Part shown: in pieces, positions 6,953-62,383 of the stretch
Layout: every line of letters begins with the position of its first letter
Position numbering within the stretch: the stretch's first letter is position 1
Sequence record: NC_023568.1
DNA: 64,000 nucleotides
Direction: 5' to 3' (one strand)
The notes under the pieces: model-generated
Database searches by the model: none
The model's input: only the letters and a program-made list of their open reading frames with translations
Told to the model about the DNA's origin: nothing
Position numbers and translations under genes: made by a program

Positions 6953-7381
6953 ATGTTAAAGAAACTTTTCAAAAAAATATTCCCAGACCGTGAATGGAAA
7001 GTAGCAGCTTACACAGAACAGAAATCATTCGATGTGTCTAGTTCATTTACATTTAAAGGAACGATCAAGTGTCGTGCAGTTATTCTAGTAGACAAGCATG
7101 ATCGCCGACAAGTTAGAGTCGTATTCGATGAGTACGATTATGGTCGAGATATCTCAGAGTACAACGAGAATTTGATTAGCAAGATTTTAAAGAACAGCAG
7201 CCTTGAATTGATTCGAAGCTCTATTAGTACTCGCAAGCTGAATAGCTATGAAGGGTTTGATTTGTGCGAACATCACGAAGCATTCTATGATTGGGAAACA
7301 TTCAAAAACGACTTTATCTATGGTGAAGTTGACTTAGAAGGCAATCTAATCGAGAAGAGCGAAGCGACAGAAACCGATTAG
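6953..7381 (+). CDS. hypothetical protein
   Basis: GAGG RBS; ORF track. Confidence 0.7.
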   Translation: MLKKLFKKIFPDREWKVAAYTEQKSFDVSSSFTFKGTIKCRAVILVDKHDRRQVRVVFDEYDYGRDISEYNENLISKILKNSSLELIRSSISTRKLNSYEGFDLCEHHEAFYDWETFKNDFIYGEVDLEGNLIEKSEATETD

Positions 7382-7456
7382 GCGGAAAAATTCCGTCTCA
7401 TCTTAGTAGTATTAGTGGTTTTAGTGAAGTTAGAGATATTAGGAGTATTAGAGTGA
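7356..7456 (+). repeat. origin-like element copy 1: AGAGCGAAGCG, hairpin with AAAAATT loop, six 9-bp TTAG-N5 iterons
   Basis: TTAG at 7403, 7412, 7421, 7430, 7439, 7448; second copy at 58712-58814 on - strand. Confidence 0.85.
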
Positions 7457-8154
7457 AGAAATCAATTCTCGTGGCAGTTACAGTCGCAGTACTGGCAGGT
7501 TGTGGTGAAAGACCACAACTTGAAACCAAGACTGGTAAAAAATTCACAACTGTAAATGCAGTTGTGAATAAAAAAGAGCGTGAAATGATCAACTACTGGC
7601 TGGCAGATGCTGACGCTAGTAACTATTTGTATAACCCATTGTGGACTGCTCTTGCCACTCGTAACAAATACGGTTCTAATGCAGTGCGACGTTCAGACGA
7701 TGAAATCCCTTTCTGTGATGTGATTGCATCACTTGTCGAAGCCGAAGACGACATTCGCAGTACATACGAACGCACGATGAGTAACCAGTGGCGAACGCAG
7801 TATGGTATTAGTTTGAGTGAGCAATGTAATTACGATGCTCCTGAATCTCTAGAAGAGAAAGCACAGCGCGTTGAAAAACTTGAAATGCAAGCTGAGTTAA
7901 ATCAGCGTGAACAAAACGCATTGTCTGGTAATATCAACAATATGGATGATGTTCAAGACGCGACAATCGAGCTGTTAGACCCGCATGAGTATGACTATCT
8001 CATTGAATCTGCACGCGACTGCAATCGAGCTAAAACAAAGTTACTTGAGCTAACGCAAGCAGGTAAACCATTAACACAAGCTGACGGGTCTGAAGCGCGT
8101 AAGTTGATAATCGAATGCAAAATGCATAAACTTGAAGTTGAATTGAATAAGTGA
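7453..8154 (+). CDS. predicted lipoprotein, paralogue of 13678-14397
   Basis: AGGAG RBS + GTG; lipobox LAGC; shared motifs with paralogue. Confidence 0.8.
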   Translation: MKKSILVAVTVAVLAGCGERPQLETKTGKKFTTVNAVVNKKEREMINYWLADADASNYLYNPLWTALATRNKYGSNAVRRSDDEIPFCDVIASLVEAEDDIRSTYERTMSNQWRTQYGISLSEQCNYDAPESLEEKAQRVEKLEMQAELNQREQNALSGNINNMDDVQDATIELLDPHEYDYLIESARDCNRAKTKLLELTQAGKPLTQADGSEARKLIIECKMHKLEVELNK

Positions 8155-28258: not shown

Positions 28259-28331
28259 CAAAGCGCCTTCGGGCGCTTTTTTTGTTTAGAACTCAGAGGT
28301 TTTGACATAAAATAGTTAGACGGAGGTGACG

Positions 28332-28532
28332 ATGAAAGAAAATCAACAATTGAAAGTTCGATGTTCAATTCAAATCGCAGAGCAGTTACAACAGTTGCCC
28401 GAATTTCGTGACATGTCAGTTACGAAAATTTTCCACACACTATCTACAAATTATCTCAACAAGAGTGCGTTTCAGCACATCGGGGCGATTAATGGAAAGA
28501 ACAGAAATCATCATTCCTACGAAGAACGTTAG
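28332..28532 (+). CDS. ribbon-helix-helix-like small protein
   Basis: GGAGG RBS; QLKVR strand, helix, MSVTKI second helix. Confidence 0.5.
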   Translation: MKENQQLKVRCSIQIAEQLQQLPEFRDMSVTKIFHTLSTNYLNKSAFQHIGAINGKNRNHHSYEER

Positions 28533-29868: not shown

Positions 29869-30444
29869 TCACTGTACTTTCTTAGTTCGTTTGTCAATCT
29901 CGTCAACTTTAGTTTCAAGATTATCAATACGAGTGTTAAGCATATCACCGTCTTTACCAGTAAAGCGGTCAGACGAATCAATGTTTATTAATGTCTCGAC
30001 TCTGGCTAAATCAGTCTCAATCTTGGAATAACGTGAATGGGTACCTTCTATCTTAGATAAAATATCAGTTTGTGAGTTTTTTAAACTGTTAACTGAATTC
30101 ACTAGATTTTTGTCGCCCAATTCAGACGTATTCCTCAATGCTCTTACTTCGCTCTCAAGCCTACCATAGTTCACAAGCACTTCATCTTGTTTCTTAACCA
30201 AAAGAGCTTGTGACCCTTCTAAGCTAATCAACTGTTGCGCTTGTGTCGCGTTTGTTAGTTTGATGTCAGTTATTTCTTGCATGATCATCGCGTTTTGAGC
30301 TACAGCGGTTTTTCCTTGCTCTTGTACAACTTGTAATGCTTCCTGCATTCCGCCGTAGTTTGTCGCCACGCTCATTGAGGTGATAGCCAGAGGGATAAGA
30401 ATAGTACCGATAATAGCCAATAAAACTTGTGCTATCTTGCTCAT
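29869..30444 (-). CDS. single-TM coiled-coil late protein; holin/spanin candidate
   Basis: N-terminal TM, heptad repeats, TATAAATA at 30491-30498, position of T4 gene t. Confidence 0.5.
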   Translation of the reverse strand: MSKIAQVLLAIIGTILIPLAITSMSVATNYGGMQEALQVVQEQGKTAVAQNAMIMQEITDIKLTNATQAQQLISLEGSQALLVKKQDEVLVNYGRLESEVRALRNTSELGDKNLVNSVNSLKNSQTDILSKIEGTHSRYSKIETDLARVETLINIDSSDRFTGKDGDMLNTRIDNLETKVDEIDKRTKKVQ

Positions 30445-48759: not shown

Positions 48760-48848
48760 TGGCGGAAGCACTGGGAATCGAACCCAGAGAACGCTATTAA
48801 CGTCCGACACCTTAGCAGGGTGCTGTCATACCTTTAGACCATGCTTCC
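48760..48848 (-). tRNA. tRNA-Ser(GCT)
   Basis: cloverleaf, loop CTGCTAA, long variable arm, CCA. Confidence 0.93.
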
Positions 48849-48887
48849 AACGTCTCATCAATTAATGGCATGCTGCTCTCATGCTCA

Positions 48888-48921
48888 GACACATATTTGC
48901 TCTTATTGCTGACGTGTGCCA
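48888..48921 (-). ncRNA. minimal copy of the helix-CAGCA module
   Basis: TGGCACA-CGT-CAGCAAT...TGTGTC. Confidence 0.5.
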
Positions 48922-49016
48922 CGCGCTTCGCAGATCCACTTTAGATAATTTAAAGACCTAGCGGGACTCTTAGCAGGTCTATCCACTCTCTTTCGATTCG
49001 CGTTGCTAAGTGAATT

Positions 49017-49093
49017 TGGTGCCCAACCCGAGATTCGAACTCGGAACTCCTAGTGTTTGAAACTAGTGCCTCTGCCAATTGGACTAGTTGGGC
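49017..49093 (-). tRNA. tRNA-Leu(CAA)
   Basis: loop TTCAAAC, short variable region, CCA. Confidence 0.9.
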
Positions 49094-49104
49094 TTGAATA
49101 AACT

Positions 49105-49196
49105 GCCGCGACTCTTTAATCCCTAACACCTGTCAGCTTTCGCTCGGCTGAGACCGTTTTTCAACGGCGGTAGTCTAGCTTCGTATAGAACGCGGC
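49105..49196 (-). ncRNA. structured RNA with GAAA tetraloops
   Basis: GCCGCG/CGCGGC closing stem; CCGTT-GAAA-AACGG; TCAGC/GCTGA. Confidence 0.55.
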
Positions 49197-49209
49197 TTAT
49201 GCTAGAATT

Positions 49210-49286
49210 TGGTACGCACGGGCGGATTCGAACCGCCATCCCTGAGATTTTAAGCCTCATGCCTCTGCCAATTGGACCACGTGCGC
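49210..49286 (-). tRNA. tRNA-Leu(TAA)
   Basis: loop CTTAAAA, CCA. Confidence 0.92.
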
Positions 49287-49288
49287 AT

Positions 49289-49362
49289 TGGAGCTCGAAC
49301 AGGGAATCGAACCCTGACCTGCGGATTTGCAATCCGTCATACTTCCATTATACGATTCGAGC
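49289..49362 (-). tRNA. tRNA-Cys(GCA)
   Basis: loop TTGCAAA, U73, CCA. Confidence 0.92.
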
Positions 49363-49374
49363 ATAAATGTACTT

Positions 49375-49451
49375 TGGGGTGACAGACGGGGATCGAACCC
49401 GCATCTTCCGGAATCACAACCCGGGGGTATTTCCACTTCACCCACTGCCAC
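49375..49451 (-). tRNA. tRNA-His(GTG)
   Basis: loop TTGTGAT, C73, CCA; -1 base is T. Confidence 0.9.
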
Positions 49452-49577
49452 ACCAAAGTACACTTAAAAGTTTGCATTATGTCTTGGAGAAATAGATAAA
49501 TCTACTAGCAACACCGCCGTCGCTACCTGCAATACTTTGGGATGTTTACGACATCAAACGAATGCACTTCCTGTGCA

Positions 49578-49829
49578 TTAATCAGATTTATTTAAGTAGA
49601 TTCTATCAGGCGATAGTTCTCTTGTAAACATATTTCTGAAATAAATTTCGATATCTGCTTCAGTTGTTGAAGACTCAATTTCAAGAGCACGCTCAAGAAC
49701 ACGCTCAAGAATCTTGTTACGCTTAAACCCAGCGCGCCAACAGTCAAACATAAGTCTGTCCATTTGATTTAGCTTTTCGATTTGATTCGGGTTTACGTAT
49801 TCATGAGTTTCAAGTAATACAGGCGTCAT
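49578..49829 (-). CDS. hypothetical protein within tRNA cluster
   Basis: GAG RBS; ORF track. Confidence 0.7.
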   Translation of the reverse strand: MTPVLLETHEYVNPNQIEKLNQMDRLMFDCWRAGFKRNKILERVLERALEIESSTTEADIEIYFRNMFTRELSPDRIYLNKSD

Positions 49830-49852
49830 AATTTATTTCTCATCATAAAGAA

Positions 49853-49926
49853 TGGTAGTCCCTAGTGGAATCGAGCCACTTCTTTCTCTGTGTAAAAGAG
49901 ACGTACTTCCATTATACTAAGGGACC
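49853..49926 (-). tRNA. tRNA-Val(TAC)
   Basis: loop TTTACAC, T-loop CTCGATT, CCA. Confidence 0.9.
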
Positions 49927-49932
49927 AAAATT

Positions 49933-50006
49933 TGGAGCGGGTACACGGACTCGAACCGAGACGAACGACTTGGAAGGACGTCATGCTACCATTACATCAT
50001 ACCCGC
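49933..50006 (-). tRNA. tRNA-Gly(TCC)
   Basis: loop CTTCCAA, U73, CCA. Confidence 0.92.
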
Positions 50007-50195
50007 ATTGTTAATCTGAAGCGTCGAACAAATCACGTATTGCACGTAGATTCGTAAGCTCTACAGTAAGTGTTCTTATAAAGAACGGGTTGGTCTCATT
50101 CGCGAGACATTTTTCAACATATCGAATTTTATCGCGTATGTTGCCCTTGCTTAGTGTAAAGTAGTCATGCTTCGTAACCTCTTTGTTTTTGAATT

Positions 50196-50271
50196 TGGAG
50201 GTGACACCGATACTCGAAATCGGATCTTACGCCGTATGAAAGCGTTGCTCTGCCACTTGAGCTACATCACC
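50196..50271 (-). tRNA. tRNA with CAT anticodon (Met or Ile2)
   Basis: loop TTCATAC, CCA; identity ambiguous. Confidence 0.8.
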
Positions 50272-50273
50272 AA

Positions 50274-50500
50274 TTGCAGTAATTAACTCATTTAATCGCA
50301 CACTGGCTGACACCATATATTCATGGTCTGAGTGAGGAACCACATAGTGGGTACTGTTACCTCTGCTTAGTTTTGATTGTTTTACATGACGATGACTAGA
50401 AACGTTCATAATAATGCCACGCGATACATCCTATATCGCTGCTAACATCTAAGTTAGCGTATCTTGCCTTTCGGCTACAGTGTCGTTTCCGACGAATTAA
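50274..50500 (-). ncRNA. about 225-nt multi-hairpin RNA
   Basis: GTCG-GAAA-CGAC, GCC-GAAA-GGC, GCTAAC/GTTAGC, ACACTG/CAGTGT helices; ends TTACTGCAA. Confidence 0.55.
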
Positions 50501-50504
50501 GTAC

Positions 50505-50733
50505 AGACAATACCGAAGTGTTTTTTTCGTCTTTTGCATAAATCGGAGTTGACTAGCTTATTGATTCTCAACAAGCAAATATCGTCTGTTTCAGCGACGC
50601 GCCTATCTGACTATTTCTAGACAGAGAGAATCTTTCCTTTCAAGCTGCGCCTAAGCAAGCTCAGGTTAAAATCAGCCCAGGTTAAGATCATCACTTCTTT
50701 TAAGTAATTTCAATTGTTTGCTGTATATTGTCT
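50505..50733 (-). ncRNA. 229-nt structured RNA closed by the AG-N8-CAGCA module (Y-RNA-like, long type)
   Basis: AGACAATA/TATTGTCT terminal helix; AAAGACGA...AAAACACTTC 3' motif. Confidence 0.75.
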
Positions 50734-50796
50734 CTCTCACCATGCTCGTGATATGCCGAAGCAAAGTATCATTCGTCGCATGATAAGAGCTTAATA

Positions 50797-50872
50797 TGGC
50801 ACGCCGTATGAGATTCGAACTCATAACCCCATCCTTAGAAGGGACGTGCTCTTCCAATTGAGCTAACAGCGC
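50797..50872 (-). tRNA. tRNA-Arg(TCT)
   Basis: loop CTTCTAA, CCA. Confidence 0.92.
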
Positions 50873-50946
50873 ATTGAAAAGATTCGAACCATGAACTAGT
50901 GTAGACGATGGTAGTAAAGAGAGTCTACGCTCATGTGTTCGAAATT

Positions 50947-51021
50947 TGGTGGACACGCAGGGAGTCGAACCCTATCTTCCTCATTGCAAGTGAGGCGCTT
51001 TCCCAATTAAGCTAACGGCCC
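50947..51021 (-). tRNA. tRNA-Ala(TGC), irregular acceptor stem
   Basis: loop CTTGCAA, G3.U70 present, lower acceptor mispaired or bulged. Confidence 0.8.
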
Positions 51022-51028
51022 ATATTTT

Positions 51029-51238
51029 TTACAACTGTGTGATTGAAATATATTCCCAACCGTATAAACCTTCAAGTTCTTCAATCGGCTCACTAACAAT
51101 GTCAGAAATATATTCAGCAACTTTTGCTTCAACTTCTTCATTAGATAATTCTTCACTAACGGAAAAAACATCTTCGTTATTGTTGCCACCGAAATCCCCA
51201 CCAATGTCATATTCACACCATACAGAAATATAGTTCAT
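51029..51238 (-). CDS. small acidic hypothetical protein
   Basis: GAG RBS before ATG 51238. Confidence 0.65.
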   Translation of the reverse strand: MNYISVWCEYDIGGDFGGNNNEDVFSVSEELSNEEVEAKVAEYISDIVSEPIEELEGLYGWEYISITQL

Positions 51239-51262
51239 GTTATTCTCGCAGTTGTTTGAAAA

Positions 51263-51338
51263 TGGTGCCCTGACACGGATTCGAACCGCGAACCTGCTCA
51301 TTACAAGTGAGCTGCACTGCCAGTTGTGCTATCAGGGC
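51263..51338 (-). tRNA. tRNA-Thr(TGT)
   Basis: loop CTTGTAA, CCA. Confidence 0.93.
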
Positions 51339-51344
51339 GTTACT

Positions 51345-51457
51345 GAGTGTTATTACTAGCGTCGTCCAGACCAGTGATACCAACACTGAAAGGGAATCGA
51401 ACCCTAAACATTTCTTTCCGATAAGAATATTAGTAAATTGTTTGCTGAAAACACTCT
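51345..51457 (-). ncRNA. YrlA-like circularly permuted tRNA mimic with the module
   Basis: GAGTGTT/AACACTC end helix; order T arm (TTCGATT), capped acceptor-like stem, GG-containing D-like loop. Confidence 0.75.
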
Positions 51458-51465
51458 TCGGTATT

Positions 51466-51539
51466 TGGCTGGGGATAACAGATTCGAACTGATACCAACG
51501 CATTCAAAGTACGTTATGCTGCCTTTACACCAATCCCCA
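51466..51539 (-). tRNA. tRNA-Gln(TTG)
   Basis: U1-A72, loop CTTTGAA, CCA. Confidence 0.93.
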
Positions 51540-51558
51540 ATTGTTCTTAAATTATCTT

Positions 51559-51634
51559 TGGCGGAACCGACGGGTTTCGAACCCGCTACCTTCTCCGTGA
51601 CAGGGAGACATGCAACCACTTACACCTCGGCTCC
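51559..51634 (-). tRNA. tRNA-Asp(GTC)
   Basis: loop CTGTCAC, G73, CCA. Confidence 0.93.
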
Positions 51635-51704
51635 CCAAAGACAACTTAAAGTAGTTGCTTTGTTTTTTTCAAGTTCACACTTAACGGTAGTGACTCTCCG
51701 AATT

Positions 51705-51780
51705 TGGCGGACCGCCCGAGACTCGAACTCGGAACTCCTCGCTTAACAGGCGAGCACTCTAACCATTGAGTTAGCGATCC
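51705..51780 (-). tRNA. tRNA-Asn(GTT)
   Basis: loop CTGTTAA, G73, CCA. Confidence 0.93.
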
Positions 51781-51792
51781 TAAAATTTAAAC

Positions 51793-51850
51793 AGTAATCC
51801 TTTTTGCTTTTTCCAAATAAAAGTTTTGTATTGTTTGCTGTAAGATTACT
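51793..51850 (-). ncRNA. 58-nt end-closed RNA with the module
   Basis: AGTAATC/GATTACT helix then TTA-CAGCAAA. Confidence 0.7.
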
Positions 51851-51855
51851 TAAAC

Positions 51856-51929
51856 TGGCAGGGGCATAGAGATTCGAACTCTAACGAACGGGTTTGGAAT
51901 CCGTCATGCTGCCTTTACATCATGCCCCT
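51856..51929 (-). tRNA. tRNA-Trp(CCA)
   Basis: loop TTCCAAA, CCA. Confidence 0.92.
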
Positions 51930-51935
51930 AAAATT

Positions 51936-52009
51936 TGGTAGTCCCTAAGAGAATCGAACTCTTACCAAGCGATTATCGGTCGCACGCTCTACCGTTGAGC
52001 TAAGGGACT
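51936..52009 (-). tRNA. tRNA-Ile(GAT)
   Basis: loop CCGATAA (C33), CCA. Confidence 0.88.
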
Positions 52010-52072
52010 AAAGTGTGCGCATTTCAGCGCACTGTTAATCGGTTAAGTGACTAAACTTCCCGGTTAACTAAT

Positions 52073-52171
52073 TGGCGGAAGACTAGGGATTCGAACCCTA
52101 ACATCACCTCCCGGTGACCGACGGTTTTCAAGACCGTTGCCGCTACCCAGAATCTTTCGGCTAAGCCTTCC
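52073..52171 (-). tRNA. tRNA-Ser(TGA), enlarged D-loop
   Basis: loop CTTGAAA, long variable arm, 15-nt D-loop, CCA. Confidence 0.85.
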
Positions 52172-52178
52172 ATTAATT

Positions 52179-52255
52179 TGGTTGCGTGGGGCTGGATTCG
52201 AACCAGCGTTCTCCGGCTTATGAGACCGACGAGATGACCACTTCTCTACCCCGCA
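52179..52255 (-). tRNA. initiator-like tRNA-Met(CAT) with bulged acceptor stem
   Basis: resembles fMet tRNA (GCGGGG...CTCATAA...GCAACCA); one extra A in 3' strand. Confidence 0.8.
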
Positions 52256-52265
52256 ATTATTCAAC

Positions 52266-52352
52266 AGCTTGCGTTCTTTGGTCTGTTTATCGCTGTCTGA
52301 ACTGAGTTCGTCGAGCGATCAATAGAGTAAGTTAAATTGCAGTATGCAAGCT
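52266..52352 (-). ncRNA. 87-nt end-closed RNA with the module
   Basis: AGCTTGC/GCAAGCT helix then ATA-CTGCAAT; internal ATCGCT/AGCGAT stem. Confidence 0.72.
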
Positions 52353-52357
52353 AAAAC

Positions 52358-52443
52358 TGGTGGAGCGTAGAGGAATCGAACCTCTCTACCCGTTAAGGGT
52401 CAGGGATTTACAGTCCCCTGTCTCACCTTGAGACGTACGCTCC
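52358..52443 (-). tRNA. tRNA-Tyr(GTA)
   Basis: loop CTGTAAA, long variable arm, CCA. Confidence 0.93.
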
Positions 52444-52449
52444 AGAATA

Positions 52450-52524
52450 TGGTTCTCCCGACGAGATTCGAACTCGCGCACTTCACCTTGAAAGGGTGAT
52501 GACCTACCGTTAGTCCACGGGAGA
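52450..52524 (-). tRNA. tRNA-Glu(TTC)
   Basis: loop CTTTCAA, CCA. Confidence 0.92.
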
Positions 52525-52587
52525 ATTAAATTGTATATTGATTTGCAAGCTATCTAACTTGCAAAGCGATACACAATGTATCTAATT

Positions 52588-52664
52588 TGGTACGCCGCTC
52601 TGGACTCGAACCAGACACCTGAGAGTTAAAAGCTCCCTGCTCTTCCATGATGAGCTACCGACGC
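52588..52664 (-). tRNA. tRNA-Lys(TTT) copy 1
   Basis: loop CTTTTAA, CCA. Confidence 0.88.
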
Positions 52665-52675
52665 ATTATAAAATC

Positions 52676-52749
52676 TGGTGGGTCCACAGAGATTCGAACT
52701 CTGACTGAAGGATTAAAAGTCCCATATGCTACCATTACATCATAGACCC
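52676..52749 (-). tRNA. tRNA-Lys(TTT) copy 2 (different body)
   Basis: loop CTTTTAA, CCA. Confidence 0.88.
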
Positions 52750-52837
52750 AATTTGATTTTCACGTTAAGAGCGTTTGCTAAATAACTCAAAACTAAAACC
52801 CCTTGCTTGATTTAACTCTTACAAACAAGCTATAATA

Positions 52838-52912
52838 TGGTGCACCCCCTCGGAATCGAACCGAGCACTGCGGGACTTCAATCCGCCGCTTTTCCTGATA
52901 AGCTAAGGGTGC
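52838..52912 (-). tRNA. tRNA-Phe(GAA)
   Basis: loop TTGAAGT, CCA. Confidence 0.88.
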
Positions 52913-52913
52913 T

Positions 52914-52990
52914 TGGTACGCAAGAAGAGATTCGAACTCTTAACTTCTGGTTTCTAAGACCAGTGCCTCTGCCAATTGGGCTACTTGCGC
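52914..52990 (-). tRNA. tRNA-Leu(TAG)
   Basis: loop CTTAGAA, CCA. Confidence 0.92.
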
Positions 52991-53009
52991 ATTAAATTTT
53001 GTAAACTTC

Positions 53010-53138
53010 TTTTCTTCATTGTACATGATGTTTATATCGTTGTAAACATCTTTTTTGAAAAACTTTTCATTCGATTTTGAATGATAATTCGCTTTTCTTC
53101 ATTGTACATGATGTTTATATCGTTGTAAACATCTTTTT
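53010..53138 (-). promoter_or_regulatory. tandem identical 46-bp promoters for tRNA genes
   Basis: 53010-53055 = 53093-53138; TTTACA-17-TACAAT with internal GATGTTTA/TAAACATC inverted repeat. Confidence 0.8.
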
Positions 53139-53344
53139 GATTTTTTTTTTGAAGAACTTAACGTTTTCATTTTCTATGTGTTAATATTAACACTCGCTCA
53201 AGACATCATAAACACTAATTCATGAAAAGTTCGTTAAATTCTATCATCTCGACAGTACTTAACGAGATACGGTCCTAAGCGTATCAATTCGTAGAAGCAG
53301 TTTCGGGAATGTGCGAAAGCGAGCTTCAATCAAACAACACTAAC

Positions 53345-53420
53345 TGGCACCCAATACAAGATTCGAACTTGTAACCTTCGCCTTCGTAGGGCGCTGCTCT
53401 TCCAATTGAGCTAATCGGGC
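53345..53420 (-). tRNA. tRNA-Arg(ACG)
   Basis: loop CTACGAA, CCA. Confidence 0.92.
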
Positions 53421-53427
53421 ATTAAAC

Positions 53428-53504
53428 TGGTCCGTGACAAGCGATTCGAACGCTTAACTTCTCCGCCCCAAACGGAGTACTCTACCAGATTGAGCTAGTC
53501 ACGG
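53428..53504 (-). tRNA. tRNA-Pro(TGG) copy 1
   Basis: C1-G72, loop TTTGGGG, CCA. Confidence 0.92.
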
Positions 53505-53513
53505 ATTTTAAAT

Positions 53514-53587
53514 TGGTCGGGACGAAGAGACTCGAACTCTTACCACATGCTCCCAAAGCATGAACGCTACCTTTACGCCACGTCCCG
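53514..53587 (-). tRNA. tRNA-Pro(TGG) copy 2
   Basis: C1-G72, loop TTTGGGA, CCA. Confidence 0.92.
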
Positions 53588-53664
53588 TTTGTTCTTTAAC
53601 TTTGTTTATCATACTCTGTAATCAAAGTACGTTAAACAAAATTTCTTAACTTTCTTACGCCCAT

Positions 53665-53688
53665 AAAAAAGGACGCTATTTGCGTCCT
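53665..53688 (-). terminator. rho-independent terminator
   Basis: GGACGC aaata GCGTCC + T6 on - strand. Confidence 0.8.
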
Positions 53689-53717
53689 CAAGTATACTTC
53701 TATGTTATACTATCGGA

Positions 53718-53831
53718 CTACAAGAGGGTATCCCACTTCTGGTTCGCAATCGGATTCGCTAGATACACGAATTCTGAGCGCAGAAAATCGCTGCGTAATG
53801 TCTCAGATGAATGTGTAAACGAATGCGTCAT
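53718..53831 (-). CDS. 37-aa small ORF, absent from the ORF track
   Basis: AAGAGAG RBS; MTHSFTHSSETLRSDF...WDTLL; own terminator downstream. Confidence 0.45.
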   Translation of the reverse strand: MTHSFTHSSETLRSDFLRSEFVYLANPIANQKWDTLL

Positions 53832-53958
53832 TGAATGCTCTCTTGAAATAAAAATTAAAATTTGTTTTGTTTCTTTATAGTACTTATAACACTAAATCTG
53901 ACGATTTGCGGTATTTTCGCAGAAAATTGAAAAAAATTATCAATTTTCTGCGATTTTA

Positions 53959-54195
53959 TTAACCTAAGTGTTTTCGCTTGTTCATTTCAGCAAGAATTTC
54001 GTCGTTGTAGTGCTTATTAAGCTCAACGAATTTCTTGTGCTGATCTGAAGTCAATTCGTTTGTATCGTTCAGATGCTTCAAAAACCCAAGAGGCTTACGA
54101 AACGACTTGCGATATTCATTCAGACGCTCATCTGTTAGATTGCGCAATTGTTTCGGAGTCAGTAACGTTTTGTTGATATTAAATGTTCCGCTCAT
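53959..54195 (-). CDS. hypothetical protein
   Basis: GAGGT RBS before ATG 54195. Confidence 0.7.
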   Translation of the reverse strand: MSGTFNINKTLLTPKQLRNLTDERLNEYRKSFRKPLGFLKHLNDTNELTSDQHKKFVELNKHYNDEILAEMNKRKHLG

Positions 54196-54221
54196 GTTAT
54201 ACCTCACTAGTTTATCAAAAA

Positions 54222-54337
54222 TGGTAGTCGGGGCTGGATTCGAACCAGCGACCACGTGCTTAACAGGCAATTGAAGGAGTGCTGGAGCGATACTTGTCAG
54301 TATCATTCTTCGTGCTCTACCACTGAGCTACCCGACT
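54222..54337 (-). ncRNA. tRNA body (Asn-like loop retained) with the module inserted in the anticodon arm
   Basis: AGTCGGG/CCCGACT, D and T arms, ACCA; insert GATACT-GACA-AGTATC-GCTC-CAGCA. Confidence 0.8.
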
Positions 54338-54342
54338 ATGAA

Positions 54343-54864
54343 TTATTTAACTTTGAATTTCAAATTTCGATATTCAAAGTTTCGTTTGTCTTTTTTACTG
54401 TAATACGTATCCCAATCAATAGAAACAGGACAGTTCTTACTACCCACACGAGATAAGAAAACGTCGTGAGTGTCTTTGTAAGCTTCTCTGAGAGACTTTA
54501 CTTGTTTCTCATGATGAGTTATGTACTCAGCACACGCTTTGTTGTACTCAGCTTTAGAGAAGCGGTCATCGCCCGTGAAATTACCGTTTAGATACGGTCG
54601 AATAACACGAACACGCTCTTTAGACCATCCCATACTAAAACTATTTTCAATTCGACCGATGATTTCACCAGTCTTTTTACATCGTGCAAGAATAACCCAG
54701 CAACGCTCTCTTCGAAAGTCTTTTCGAGTGAATACATTGATGTACTTATCAACATACTCTTGATAGCGTTCGTTATATATTTTACGAAGTCTGCTACGTT
54801 CTTCAATCGTCATAGCAGCACGTTCTTCTTTAGAGAACGCCTCAACGAACTTCAATGGTTTCAT
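54343..54864 (-). CDS. hypothetical protein
   Basis: GAGG RBS before ATG 54864. Confidence 0.7.
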   Translation of the reverse strand: MKPLKFVEAFSKEERAAMTIEERSRLRKIYNERYQEYVDKYINVFTRKDFRRERCWVILARCKKTGEIIGRIENSFSMGWSKERVRVIRPYLNGNFTGDDRFSKAEYNKACAEYITHHEKQVKSLREAYKDTHDVFLSRVGSKNCPVSIDWDTYYSKKDKRNFEYRNLKFKVK

Positions 54865-54877
54865 TATAATTTCCTCT

Positions 54878-54974
54878 TGGCGCCGCTCGTGTGAATCGAA
54901 CACACGTCAAACACAACACCTCTTCAACCCAATTAGAGTTTCGAAGTAAGAGCTAATCAGCATTTCAGAGCAGC
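54878..54974 (-). ncRNA. tRNA-like RNA with CCA and non-canonical D/anticodon region
   Basis: GCTGCTC/GAGCGGC acceptor, GTGTG-TTCGATT-CACAC T arm, GCCA end. Confidence 0.65.
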
Positions 54975-55121
54975 CGAGCGTTATTTCTACATACAAGACT
55001 TCGACATCTCACATGCACTTTCTACTCGGTCCCAGTGATTCGGTACCAACGTAGGTTGCGAACCTACGTCTGCACTAATGTTGGGAATACACTGTGTATT
55101 GTACGCCAGTTAGCGGCATTT

Positions 55122-55352
55122 TTAAAGATAGCTGTCAAAAACATCATCACTGACTTCTTCAATCTTGATGTCAGCGTAACATTCGTTCGCAACTGCTCGA
55201 ATTTCATCTATTGAAACTGTACCCGAGTACAAAACAACAGAGTCGTTCGGAATCACAACATCACACATGTATCTGTCAAACATTTCAGTTCTGAAATCGT
55301 AATCGACGTAGCAAGCGTGCATTGATGTGATAACTAGCAATTTATGTGACAT
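55122..55352 (-). CDS. hypothetical early protein
   Basis: TTGACA-17-TAGTAT promoter at about 55383-55411; GAGG RBS. Confidence 0.7.
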   Translation of the reverse strand: MSHKLLVITSMHACYVDYDFRTEMFDRYMCDVVIPNDSVVLYSGTVSIDEIRAVANECYADIKIEEVSDDVFDSYL

Positions 55353-55431
55353 AATGTTTTCCTCGTGTAGTTGATAATGTGTATACTACACGTTGATGAA
55401 ACGTCTGTCAACAACTTTTTTCAATTTATTT

Positions 55432-55509
55432 TGGTGACCCCAACAGGACTCGAACCTGTAACCTACCGATTATGAGTCGGTTGCTCTAACCGTGTTGAGC
55501 TATAGGGCC
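55432..55509 (-). tRNA. tRNA with CAT anticodon (Ile2- or Met-like)
   Basis: GGCCCTA acceptor, loop CTCATAA, CCA. Confidence 0.88.
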
Positions 55510-55510
55510 A

Positions 55511-55879
55511 TCATTTCTCTAGAAATCGACCAACTTTCGCAGCGAAGATGTTTGCTTCTTCTGTAATACGAGCAGTCGATTTAATTTGATGAAATGCGTC
55601 TTGTTGATGCAGCAAATCGAGCTTATCTGCACATTTCATCAATTCTTTTATAGTTTGCATAATCTCAATATTATCAATCTGACTTGTATCAGGGTGATAA
55701 TTTAGATTGTCTAATATCGGCAGAACTTGTTGATAGCAACCCATGCCAATGAAGTTTATCATAAGTCTATACTGCATTTCAACAGCAAATGTACAATATT
55801 TTCGAAGATTGCGCTTTACAATCTCACAACGATGCAATATACAATCAAGTTCGTCATTTATGTCATTAAACTTATTCAT
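55511..55879 (-). CDS. hypothetical protein
   Basis: GAGGG RBS before ATG 55879. Confidence 0.7.
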   Translation of the reverse strand: MNKFNDINDELDCILHRCEIVKRNLRKYCTFAVEMQYRLMINFIGMGCYQQVLPILDNLNYHPDTSQIDNIEIMQTIKELMKCADKLDLLHQQDAFHQIKSTARITEEANIFAAKVGRFLEK

Positions 55880-55893
55880 AAACCCTCGAAAAT

Positions 55894-56017
55894 TGGTGGA
55901 GAGTACGGGATTTGAACCACGTGACAAAAAGATTTACCTAGTTATTAAGGTTGCAGCATGAATGCTTGTCAGTATTCTTTAACATTCTTTTGCTCTACCA
56001 GACTGAGCTAACTCTCC
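55894..56017 (-). ncRNA. tRNA body with the module replacing the anticodon loop
   Basis: GGAGAGT/ACTCTCC, ACCA; GAATACT-GACA-AGCATTC-ATG-CTGCAA. Confidence 0.8.
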
Positions 56018-56024
56018 AGAATTT

Positions 56025-56140
56025 GAAGGTGAAGTGCAGGACTCGAACCTGCGACCTCCGGCGTGCATGTGAATGCAGAATGAAATCTTATCAGACTTCG
56101 TTTTTTGGCCGGCGTTCTAACCTACTGAACTAACTTCACC
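56025..56140 (-). ncRNA. Asp-like tRNA body with the module replacing the anticodon loop
   Basis: GGTGAAGT/ACTTCACC, CCGGC/GCCGG stem; GAAGTCT-GATA-AGATTTC-ATT-CTGCA; no CCA. Confidence 0.78.
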
Positions 56141-57983: not shown

Positions 57984-58628
57984 TCACCTTAAATTTAAAT
58001 TATCAATTTGTTCATACAGTTCTTCAAGAGAACCGTTATTGTCTATTTGAATAGCGTCTTCAATAAAACCCAATTCGGTATCGCTAATGTGATTAGATGC
58101 CAGAGAACCTTCTCGGTTAACTTGTAACATCGTGCCACCAAGCTCATATACTAAATTCATTTCGTTTTCAAAACGAACATCAGTAATTATAAAGAGCAAG
58201 TCGGGGTTGTTAAACACTAACTGATTGTATTTATCACGTGCATAATTGATCCAATGCTGATCGTTAAGAGAACGTGCAACATCAGTACCTGTCATTTGTA
58301 AGAGATCTCGAATACTAAAAAGACCAGTGTGTGGAAGTAGAGTAAAGTATACGTAATCATAATCAGCATCTACGTTTGCGTAGTCACAGCACTTCAATAC
58401 AAGTTCAATTGCTTCGTCTAACGTAAATACTGGAACTTCGCGGTCACAATCTGTTTGACCGTCTATGTCTGCATAATCATAGCCATATTCTTTTAACCCA
58501 ATGAACAACCCTTCTTTAATCGGGTCGGCAAATTTGTAAATGTAAGTGCTATCACTATGAGATTTTTTAATGGCAGCAGCAAGGGTATCTTTCCCTGAAC
58601 GCTTTTGTCCATTGATTCCTATAATCAT
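57984..58628 (-). CDS. gp1: deoxynucleoside monophosphate kinase
   Basis: GQKRSGKDT P-loop, QMTGTD, ITDVRFENE. Confidence 0.9.
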   Translation of the reverse strand: MIIGINGQKRSGKDTLAAAIKKSHSDSTYIYKFADPIKEGLFIGLKEYGYDYADIDGQTDCDREVPVFTLDEAIELVLKCCDYANVDADYDYVYFTLLPHTGLFSIRDLLQMTGTDVARSLNDQHWINYARDKYNQLVFNNPDLLFIITDVRFENEMNLVYELGGTMLQVNREGSLASNHISDTELGFIEDAIQIDNNGSLEELYEQIDNLNLR

Positions 58629-58711
58629 AATGAGTTACCTATTAATAGTGTGTTTCGTCTCACGATTATACGACAGATCTGGTGATTTCTAAACAATGCG
58701 ACAAGGTGCCT

Positions 58712-58814
58712 ATTCTCTAATATTACTAATACCTCTAACTTCACTAAAACTACTAATACTACTAAGATGATGCCCAATTTTTGGGCCTCACACCAAATTC
58801 TGCCGCTTCGCTCT
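58712..58814 (-). repeat. origin-like element copy 2
   Basis: CTAA at 58717, 58726, 58735, 58744, 58753, 58762; hairpin 58771-58787; AGAGCGAAGCG. Confidence 0.85.
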
Positions 58815-58826
58815 AGATTCAGATAC

Positions 58827-58849
58827 AAAAAAAGCCCCGTAAGGGGCTT
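58827..58849 (-). terminator. terminator after gp3
   Basis: AGCCCC ttac GGGGCT + T run on - strand. Confidence 0.8.
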
Positions 58850-58858
58850 AATTGCTTT

Positions 58859-59395
58859 CTATGAACCCATATAGGGTGTTATTACTTCTTCTTTGCCATC
58901 GACTTTATGAATCATTTCAAAATATGAATATTCAAACTCGACATCACAAGTTACGACTTCAACATCACCAGATTCAGTATAGTTCCATTCTACAGCACTG
59001 AGTGACTTTGGAAATGCATTGACAAAACGATATGTTGCTACAATTTTATCTTTGTTGTTGTCTAGAACATGTAGAAGCATAGTAACTGGAACAATCCCGT
59101 CACTTGTACTAGCACCTGTTGGGTTATTCATTGTGATCAACCATCTATACAGCTCGGCATACGTCCGCATTTCTTCATCGACTAGAAATTGAATCGAAAG
59201 ATCGTCATATGATGTACCAGAACCTGCAACATGGTTATTTGCTAGTTTGGCATACTTCGGACCACGAGTAATGCTTGCAATTTCCATCGTAACACCCGGG
59301 ATAGTGGCAGTTTGTATCTGCCACTGGAACGTTTGAGTTGCGTTATTATCAGGGATGTCGATTCGGAAATTATTCTTCATCGTTAAGTTTTTCAT
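58859..59395 (-). CDS. gp3: tail tube terminator / sheath stabiliser
   Basis: NF.I.IP, IPG, F.VDEE, LDN.K motifs as in T4 gp3. Confidence 0.88.
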   Translation of the reverse strand: MKNLTMKNNFRIDIPDNNATQTFQWQIQTATIPGVTMEIASITRGPKYAKLANNHVAGSGTSYDDLSIQFLVDEEMRTYAELYRWLITMNNPTGASTSDGIVPVTMLLHVLDNNKDKIVATYRFVNAFPKSLSAVEWNYTESGDVEVVTCDVEFEYSYFEMIHKVDGKEEVITPYMGS

Positions 59396-61535: not shown

Positions 61536-62383
61536 TATACGAAAAAATCTTCGATGCCTCGTAGAGTTACTTTCTCTGCGTTACCACACTTAGGACATTT
61601 AACGTCAACATAAGTGGTGATTCGCGGCACTGCATCGACGAAAGTTTGAACTTTCTTGAATGCAGCAGTGTCTAGTTCACCCATGATATTGATCAACTGA
61701 CCTTGTGCGGCAAGCTCTTCTTTGCTGTACACAGTATCACCAACGTGAACTTCTTTGATCGATTCAACAGCAATATTGAACAGACCTTCAGGAGTGTTAG
61801 GGTCGTTGTTCTCATACACGCGAATATTCGGGTGTTGGAGTTTGATTAATACTTGTTTGTTAACACGAACTGTATCTTCACCAGTGAATGCAGGCACAAA
61901 CGCAGCGTTTAGGTCTATATTTGCCGTGATTCGTTCACCGCATAGACGCTTGTCAGGTGCGAATACTGCTTCGATTGCCTCTTCGTTTGATTGATTAACA
62001 ATCTCTGCGAACAAGTCATCGGCAGATTTCTCAAGTTCAGCTTCTTCTTGTGCGTCTAGCTGCTTGAGTTCTTCTTCTGGCTTATCTGCACAGCAGTTGT
62101 ATTCCGCTTGAATTTCAGTTACGCCATTGCTGTTCATATACATGTGCATGAACAAGTATTCAGCATCACCAACCGTTAGGTCTTCCATCTTGATGTCTGA
62201 AACAATACAGTTTTCAAGACATTGCTCGATTGCATCAACCTTTTCATCTGATTCGTTAGCGATCAACAGTGTTTTATGCTCTTTTGCAAGCATGGCACGT
62301 AACTTGATCTCTTCGCCAGTAGATGGTAGTTTTACAGTATATTGAGGCGCAGCAAGTACGCTCAAATCAAATGGTTTTGTCAT
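61535..62383 (-). CDS. gp26: baseplate hub subunit
   Basis: P.Y.VKLPS.G..I..R....KE.K.LL, CPKCG. Confidence 0.85.
   Translation of the reverse strand: MTKPFDLSVLAAPQYTVKLPSTGEEIKLRAMLAKEHKTLLIANESDEKVDAIEQCLENCIVSDIKMEDLTVGDAEYLFMHMYMNSNGVTEIQAEYNCCADKPEEELKQLDAQEEAELEKSADDLFAEIVNQSNEEAIEAVFAPDKRLCGERITANIDLNAAFVPAFTGEDTVRVNKQVLIKLQHPNIRVYENNDPNTPEGLFNIAVESIKEVHVGDTVYSKEELAAQGQLINIMGELDTAAFKKVQTFVDAVPRITTYVDVKCPKCGNAEKVTLRGIEDFFV

Follow-up and report, generated by a model that had tools for sequence, protein, structure and literature searches.

The DNA analysed here (the window) is a stretch of 64,000 nucleotides corresponding to positions 62001–126000 of the genome of Vibrio phage VH7D (NC_023568.1), a KVP40-like T4-type phage of the genus Schizotequatrovirus. 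At the junction of two plus-strand genes of the window lies a composite element, referred to below as site B, that combines a GCGAAGC-containing motif, a small hairpin and a short tandem array:

6953–7381 (+): upstream open reading frame, 142 aa, no family; its 3′ end overlaps the element
7356–7372 (+): GCGAAGC-containing motif (exact pattern match), within the last codons of the upstream frame
7379–7399 (+): hairpin with an 8–9-bp stem and an AAA loop (alignment and fold)
7400–7456 (+): ATC linker and six TTAG-N5 units without C; units start at 7403, 7412, 7421, 7430, 7439 and 7448
7453–8154 (+): lipoprotein gene downstream of site B, encoding a signal peptide with lipobox

As originally predicted, this copy overlaps two coding ends: it takes in the last codons of the 142-aa frame, and its last TTAG units provide the GGAG Shine–Dalgarno sequence and the GTG start of the lipoprotein gene. 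A second copy, site C, is found on the opposite strand of the window:

58832–58849 (−): intrinsic terminator of the gp19-like tail-tube-family gene at 58859–59395, directly upstream of site C
58798–58814 (−): GCGAAGC-containing motif (exact pattern match)
58769–58789 (−): hairpin, CCC/GGG stem variant; DNA fold −9.2 kcal/mol, z = −2.9
58712–58768 (−): ATC linker and six TTAG-N5 units without C; GC 0.24, lowest 0.8% of 54-bp windows
58665–58693 (−): sigma-70-type promoter TTTAGA-17-TATAAT, 18 bp past the array and upstream of the dNMP kinase gene at 57984–58628

A 17-mer that includes GCGAAGC, AGAGCGAAGCGRCAGAA, has exactly two matches in the window, at 7356–7372 (+) and 58798–58814 (−). In-register runs of at least four TTAG-N5 units are confined to 7403–7451 (+) and 58717–58765 (−), with 0.00 expected from 100 shuffles. 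The exact pattern matches bear out the original prediction of a GCGAAGC-bearing motif occurring twice, about 51 kb apart, in copies of opposite orientation. The pair is nevertheless only part of a larger set, since a genome-wide search raises the count in VH7D from two to six copies, spaced 26–55 kb apart (positions of the first TTAG in the VH7D genome):

Site A: 13855 (+), outside the window
Site B: 69403 (+), window position 7403
Site C: 120765 (−), window position 58765
Site D: 146685 (+), outside the window
Site E: 172738 (−), outside the window
Site F: 215503 (+), outside the window

When phage records were searched with a 111-nt element query, 51 of them matched, at about six places per genome, and all belong to Vibrio phages of the KVP40-like group. 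Absence from related phages, which would have spoken against a conserved function, is not observed: KVP40 and VS1 carry the same six syntenic sites as VH7D, and the outgroup F86 carries five, with site B alone missing. In Vibrio phage 1.081.O (MG592456.1, ~207.1–207.4 kb; L149 113–401 (−)), the whole element is tandemly duplicated at site C, with the two copies ~165 bp apart between the tail-tube-family gene and the dNMP kinase gene. Outside Vibrio, a scan of genome contigs (one genome per species) gave chance matches only, and nothing in a plasmid collection matched the element. Scanning IMG/VR with a loose TTAG pattern gave nothing but unrelated repeats in coding sequence, tandem repeats of giant viruses and a chance partial match (L126).

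Several other features of the VH7D sequence were recorded. Window positions 48763–56139 (−) hold a cluster of 29 tRNA genes, and three tRNA hits of 112–121 nt (54225–54337, 55897–56017 and 56028–56139) suggest inserts or unusually long arms. The RefSeq annotation of NC_023568.1 contains plus-strand coding sequences only, so that minus-strand genes are unannotated (for example, L123 46327–46740 (−)); these include uvsY, tail-fibre genes, the dNMP kinase gene at 57984–58628 and the tRNAs.

Anatomy and strand constraints of the element

The anatomy of the element was drawn from an alignment of 30 copies. Its conserved core consists of a hairpin with a 9-bp stem and an AAA loop, followed by ATCATC and by six TTAG-N5 units that keep a period of exactly 9 bp, a tandem direct repeat of the kind that marks iteron origins. 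ATCATC and the TTAG cores of units 1–5 are invariant or nearly so among the 30 copies. In the window the hairpin occupies 7379–7399 and 58769–58789 and pairs GAGGCGGAA with TTCCGTCTC. The stem covariation that had been noted (CGG/CCG at site B and CCC/GGG at site C) is real, but the AAAAATT loop assigned to it is not, as the stem extends to 9 bp and leaves AAA as the loop. Over the 30 copies the hairpin is paired in 87% of cells, and two pairs switch between GC and CG through compensatory double changes. The wobbles are almost all G·U on the top strand, with a single C·A. The GCGAAGC motif, which had been taken for a constant part, varies among the 30 copies; site F and some of the A and D copies lack it. 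It is the least conserved part of the element, and the d(GCGAAGC) mini-hairpin to which it corresponds, although present at most copies, is dispensable at site F.

The strand that carries the array is almost devoid of C (26 C in 1620 bases, or 1.6%, across the 30 copies) despite its variable spacers. Both 54-nt arrays of the window contain none, in agreement with the six C-free TTAG-N5 units at an exact 9-bp period that had been described. As single-stranded DNA, the array has zero predicted structure on either strand. The arrays fall among the 0.2–5% most AT-rich 54-bp windows of the genome and coincide with a local GC minimum (at site B, GC 0.30 lies in the lowest 5%); this AT-richness is moderate, not extreme.

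Conservation of the element (0.73–0.99) exceeds that of the upstream flanks (0.54–0.90). The view that conservation is exerted at the level of nucleic acid is upheld by two observations. A coding explanation was rejected: the frame through the array (Leu-Val-Val...) lacks a start codon, contains a stop in copy D and shifts relative to the GCGAAGC part between copies. In addition, the genes upstream of sites A and B are unrelated, and their being paralogues was ruled out for want of any similarity. The hairpin was also considered as an intrinsic terminator and dismissed, given that it is followed by ATCTTAGTAG and no U run, and that the terminator scan calls separate upstream terminators only.

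The orientation of the element, which is always that of the sense strand, together with the covariation and G·U wobbles of the hairpin, would fit an element acting as RNA. According to this reading the top strand would be copied into RNA: read-through of the terminator would achieve this at sites C–F, whereas sites A and B and the chromosomal islands described below would be transcribed directly. The hairpin and the unstructured UUAG repeats would then bind a protein or nuclease, as an entry site for processing or decay, in antitermination or as a translational enhancer. UUAG can pair with UUAG via G·U, site C folds better than shuffles (z = −2.6), the array at site B serves as leader and Shine–Dalgarno sequence of the lipoprotein gene, and a promoter-like module precedes the element in the islands. 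Other results point the opposite way. At site B the fold is no more stable than those of shuffled sequences (z = −0.3); the RNAalifold consensus supports the small hairpin alone and gives no support to self-folding of the array; and Rfam 15 yields no element match at the gathering score, the sole match at E ≤ 1 being a chance-level group II intron (E = 0.93). Moreover, four of the six copies in the phage are enclosed between a strong intrinsic terminator on one side and the next promoter on the other, so that little RNA is expected from them. Function as RNA is thus judged quite improbable.

The multiplicity of copies raises the further question of whether the element is a selfish or neutral repeat with no phage function, its similarity kept only by gene conversion. 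Some signs of concerted evolution are present: the paralogous copies of F86 resemble each other as much as they resemble their orthologues, which suggests gene conversion, and the tandem duplication in 1.081.O points in the same direction. A mere repeat, however, accounts poorly for positions that are fixed and syntenic across the genus, outgroup included, for an element better conserved than its upstream flanks or for (nearly) invariant ATCATC and TTAG cores in 30 copies. There is also no transposase or target duplication, and the element has been retained independently in the islands. We regard this explanation as very improbable.

Transcriptional setting of the six sites

The original prediction placed the copies in unrelated gene contexts. 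The neighbouring genes of the six phage sites are indeed mutually unrelated, and no initiator gene adjoins any of them. The sites nevertheless share a common setting, in that all six copies are co-oriented with the genes on either side and lie at boundaries between genes or transcription units. An intrinsic terminator is located directly upstream of sites C–F (four of six). At sites A and C–F (five of six), a sigma-70-type promoter with a 17-bp spacer follows 0–25 bp downstream of the element in all four genomes, with its −35 hexamer at +49 to +76 from the first TTAG. The genes downstream encode a hypothetical protein (gp024) and a DNA methyltransferase (dam) at site A, the dNMP kinase (gene 1) at site C, fibritin (wac) at site D and UvsY at site E; at site F, a small redox-like (nrdC-like) reading frame is followed by homologues of gp24 and gp55. 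Site E lies directly upstream of the uvsY promoter (UvsY, Pfam PF11056, E = 3.6e-50), and site D places an early-type promoter ahead of a late gene, wac.

Site B is the least typical of the six copies. The scan found no terminator or promoter between the element and the lipoprotein gene, and site B is the sole copy that lacks both. Its units are degenerate in K566, where TTCG units occur, and F86 keeps a homologue of the lipoprotein gene without the site B element; in three genomes, the site B array is intact without any promoter.

A regulatory array upstream of promoters would explain much of the same anatomy as the origin reading developed below. The six TTAG units would in this case be duplex sites for a phage or host protein, for example of a ribbon-helix-helix type that coats short tandem repeats. 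Such a protein would switch five units on or off during infection (gp024/dam, gene 1, wac, uvsY and nrdC-like/24/55), with the islands using the array to sense infection or as a decoy. The proximity of a −35 hexamer, 0–25 bp downstream of five of the six copies in every genome, is in line with this, as is the fate of the promoter-less copy, which decays in K566 and is lost in F86. Counted from the start of the array, the −10 elements lie at roughly 72–74, 85 and 95–96, in steps of about one helical turn, a weak but suggestive phasing. Known ribbon-helix-helix operators (omega heptads, MetJ metboxes, ParR/ParG sites) are likewise contiguous direct repeats of 7–11 bp upstream of promoters, but they have neither a strand compositional bias nor an attached hairpin. 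The spacing between array and promoter differs by as much as 27 bp, with site A out of phase, and only five promoters would be controlled. A duplex operator also leaves unexplained why C is excluded from all variable spacer positions of the top strand and why the hairpin wobbles are confined to one strand. A regulatory role of this kind, the main rival to the origin reading, is possible, if on the doubtful side; further evidence that bears on it comes from the islands.

The setting of the sites is also reminiscent of the PeSLs, composite terminator/promoter cassettes of T4-like phages (Arbiol 2010; Comeau 2014, PMC4122927). Sites C–F share with them the succession of terminator stem-loop, early promoter, Shine–Dalgarno sequence and start codon; site A has this layout in part, without the terminator, and site B does not have it. 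The repeats, as in PeSLs, may also favour modular exchange. The definition of PeSLs, however, includes no hairpin-plus-TTAG array, which here adds a conserved 80–100 bp (PMC4122927), and PeSLs are many and lie in hyperplastic regions, whereas the TTAG element occupies six fixed sites. In the literature covered (PeSL papers on nt-1/KVP40, a review of T4 replication, Schizotequatrovirus genomics and satellites), neither the element nor the island family is described; mention in the KVP40 genome paper is possible.

Copies of the element in Vibrio chromosomal islands

A metagenome scan detected further copies on contigs without any phage match in their flanks. Genes for Thoeris ThsA/ThsB and for a PstI-like restriction-modification system are found on these contigs, along with a host gene for an M32 peptidase, and only the ~90-bp element aligns between the contigs and phage, amounting to 3% of a 3-kb query. 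Over a shared 70–86 bp, island copies are 89–97% identical to phage copies. All six TTAG units are intact in nine of nine island copies, and the hairpin is degenerate in some. A neighbouring 382-aa protein has homologues in Vibrionaceae chromosomes only, nearly all of them Vibrio (including V. alginolyticus, V. parahaemolyticus, V. cholerae, V. vulnificus and the Splendidus clade) plus one Photobacterium. In V. alginolyticus (GCA_049394175; L184 4100–17300), the gene for this protein belongs to an island of ~13 kb between the genes for the M32 peptidase and a lipid A acyltransferase, which contains genes for a large serine recombinase, an HTH regulator, a resolvase and an AAA protein as well as a ShosT-like gene. 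Such ~13-kb Vibrio islands (L184, L185–L189, L158 and L155), with Thoeris, a PstI-type restriction-modification system or a ShosT-like gene as cargo, apparently constitute an undescribed family; PICMI satellites were considered and are a different one. One island variant (L189) lacks the element.

Within the islands, the element is located in a 1.3-kb control region, upstream of and co-oriented with seven or eight iterons and a gene for a Rep-like protein of 349–382 aa. These iterons belong to the Rep-like gene and differ from the TTAG array. The N-terminal domain of the protein changes together with the iteron type and its C-terminal domain is conserved; the putative initiator role is drawn solely from this co-variation of the N-terminal domain. 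The protein has no sequence match in Pfam, PHROG, NCBIfam, PADLOC or PDB, and its AlphaFold model (pLDDT 66) has no fold match at E < 0.1. Beyond the element, no further DNA is shared between the island control region and phages. The island origin leader has native GAA-loop mini-hairpins of the same kind as GCGAAGC, and a promoter-like module lies upstream of the element. In two islands (L185 1200–2500 and L187 1200–2500), the control region contains two or three direct-repeat modules of ~130 bp. Each module ends in a promoter-like TTGAAG-16-TATACA; after the modules come a conserved leader, three GAA-loop hairpins and the iterons. The leader, which is apparently structured, and its GAA-loop hairpins may represent a primer or a regulatory RNA.

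Two observations from the islands favour a promoter-upstream regulatory array. Several islands repeat the phage layout, with a −35-like TTGAAA and a TATACA box ~12 bp past the array; P2/P4 offer a known precedent for a satellite with promoter sites of the helper type. In addition, a 68-aa reading frame of VH7D (window 28326–28532 (+)) has 43% identity over 42 aa (E = 2e-11, pairwise) to a 60-aa frame that immediately precedes the Rep-like gene in one type of island (L188, 2338–2520). Its sequence pattern suggests a ribbon-helix-helix-like protein, a call to which Pfam, having no match for the frame, lends no support, and it is a possible candidate for a DNA-binding factor shared by phage and islands. 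A second possible candidate for a shared protein is a 191-aa frame of the window (29869–30444 (−)), part of which resembles a 77-aa frame of the V. alginolyticus island (30% over 69 aa; tblastn E = 8e-7 in a small database).

In another group of explanations the element is a site for packaging, recombination or nicking: a pac-like sequence recognised by the small terminase, a strand-specific nick or clamp-loading site (as in an enhancer of T4-type late transcription), a polar fork barrier or a PeSL-like junction for cassette shuffling. Satellites typically copy the packaging signals of their helpers, and the islands would accordingly have copied the element for packaging by, or recombination with, the phage. 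Ongoing exchange is suggested by the island arrays, which match those of phages of the same host clade (V. cyclitrophicus nearest F86; Harveyi-clade islands nearest KVP40/VH7D). The likeness of the F86 paralogues (gene conversion), the tandem duplication at site C of 1.081.O and the mosaic upstream flanks of site A would likewise fit recombination. A conserved TATAAATA, a late-promoter motif of the T4 type, precedes the island Rep-like gene and is relevant to the clamp-loading variant, as this promoter class requires clamp loading in cis in T4. Finally, site B of K566 (OZ196521.1, 158.1–158.7 kb; L151) lies two genes upstream of an anti-defence island that has been swapped in the K566/K567 lineage (PMC12028318), and the element may mark a recombination junction there.

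Against packaging, six pac sites in both orientations would be without precedent, and a pac site is not required for packaging of the T4 type. The array has no counterpart in the definition of PeSLs (PMC4122927). Neither packaging nor pure homology accounts for the association with terminators and promoters, or for the fact that islands strictly keep every TTAG while the hairpin decays. Taken together, this group of explanations is considered unlikely.

A putative promoter-coupled origin or loading module

The strand and setting constraints described above narrow the likely nature of the element. The strand constraints (C-free spacers, unstructured array and one-sided hairpin wobbles), the fixed orientation relative to transcription, the location between a terminator and an outward-firing promoter and the decay of the promoter-less copy at site B together argue for a cis-acting site that is coupled to the neighbouring promoter and acts with one strand exposed. 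The element is probably read by the replication or transcription machinery of the phage. The best single reading, which we put forward tentatively, is that of a putative promoter-coupled origin or replisome-loading module acting through its unwound top strand, as indicated by the six dispersed sites, the position at uvsY, the early promoter before wac and the capture beside the replication module of the islands.

Comparison with T4 provides support and also sets limits. T4 has at least five origins in 169 kb that share no common motif, among them oriF, which is ori(uvsY), and oriE, which requires an early promoter and whose evenly spaced iterons are of unproven role (PMC3016281). Like the R-loop origins oriF and oriG (oriG being ori(34)), the element is found at several dispersed sites, some in late-gene regions. 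Each of those T4 origins is tied to a non-late promoter that provides the primer RNA, and a sigma-70-type promoter lies beside five of the six copies here. One copy, site E, is located at the uvsY promoter as oriF is, and the promoter of site D before wac recalls ori(34), where a non-late promoter lies inside a late gene. The promoters differ, however, being MotA-dependent middle promoters in T4 and sigma-70 early-type promoters here. The unwinding element of oriF and oriG lies downstream of the promoter, whereas the conserved hairpin and array are upstream, and in 22 of 23 copies tested the region from +100 to +160 has a GC content (0.28–0.45) above that of the array. In addition, hairpin and array are common to all sites, whereas T4 origins have no shared motif. 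The rnh/tail-fibre gene 34 junction of VH7D contains no copy. T4 oriE also has evenly spaced short direct repeats near an early-mode promoter that are conserved in relatives, but its repeats are 12 nt long and confined to a single locus near gene 5/repEB, as opposed to 9-bp units at six loci here; no copy lies near the gene 5 homologue (VH7D 129–131 kb).

With the iteron origins of plasmids, lambda and satellites (such as the PLE ori), the element shares tandem direct repeats; in those origins the repeats lie beside AT-rich DNA, and here the array itself is AT-rich. In those systems, however, a cognate initiator gene adjoins the repeats, which is not the case at the phage copies, and the present units are short (four fixed bases in nine), strand-asymmetric and C-free. 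No DnaA box within one mismatch was found at 22 of 23 copies scanned. TAG at every third triplet of one array strand resembles bacterial DnaA-trios, but the trios are not contiguous and are not accompanied by a DnaA box, unlike an oriC-type unwinding region, in which contiguous trinucleotide repeats adjoin a DnaA box and a GC cluster. GC and AT skews show no consistent shift at the sites.

The origin or loading role originally proposed is thus compatible with the data. It is somewhat strengthened by the six syntenic copies, the early promoters at five of them, the uvsY position, the C-poor array and the islands. It is weakened by the lack of an initiator gene, DnaA box, other origin hallmark or skew shift at the phage copies and by a conserved part that lies upstream of the promoter where the unwinding element of oriF and oriG lies downstream. 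The 9-bp period, which is unusual for duplex-bound initiators, the moderate AT-richness and the array that stays intact at site B without a promoter in three genomes also speak against it. Furthermore, the islands already have their own iterons and Rep-like gene, so that their need for a phage origin is not obvious.

Anatomy, copy number, synteny, orientation, association with promoters and terminators, strand constraints and presence in islands are observed; from these we infer unwinding, protein binding and origin firing along the following lines. The upstream intrinsic terminator would bar incoming RNA polymerase, and the downstream early sigma-70-type promoter, firing away from the element, would send negative supercoiling back into it. 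The AT-rich array, unable to fold on either strand, would melt, and the hairpin (with the GCGAAGC mini-hairpin where present) would extrude on the top strand and keep the bubble open. The six TTAG units would then be read by a phage or host protein. Alternatively, the helicase loader and helicase of the phage, or its clamp loader, could act directly on the open strand, leading to the start of replication. Through the copied module, phage infection would act on island DNA, or the island would titrate a phage factor.

T4 origin fragments let foreign DNA replicate upon infection (PMC3016281), which would explain the capture of the element by islands. More generally, the virulent KVP40-like phages may possess about six dedicated, sequence-defined origins or replisome- or clamp-loading sites, captured by an island family whose members are satellites or infection-triggered defence elements of T4-like phages. 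This combined proposal is possible rather than likely. If it is correct, capture of the element would allow the infecting phage to replicate or express the islands, or the islands to titrate a phage factor, and such satellites or defence elements would be recognisable through the shared cis element. The origins of T4-like phages are poorly defined, with no shared motif in T4 and oriE iterons of unproven role, and the element would provide this large group of phages with its first consensus for an origin or loading site. Whatever the mechanism, an identical element in islands with defence cargo points to an unrecognised phage–island relationship, in which the island is a satellite, an infection sensor or a decoy. 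This is of relevance to the broad-host-range vibriophages of aquaculture phage work, and the element itself is a simple sequence probe for such islands.
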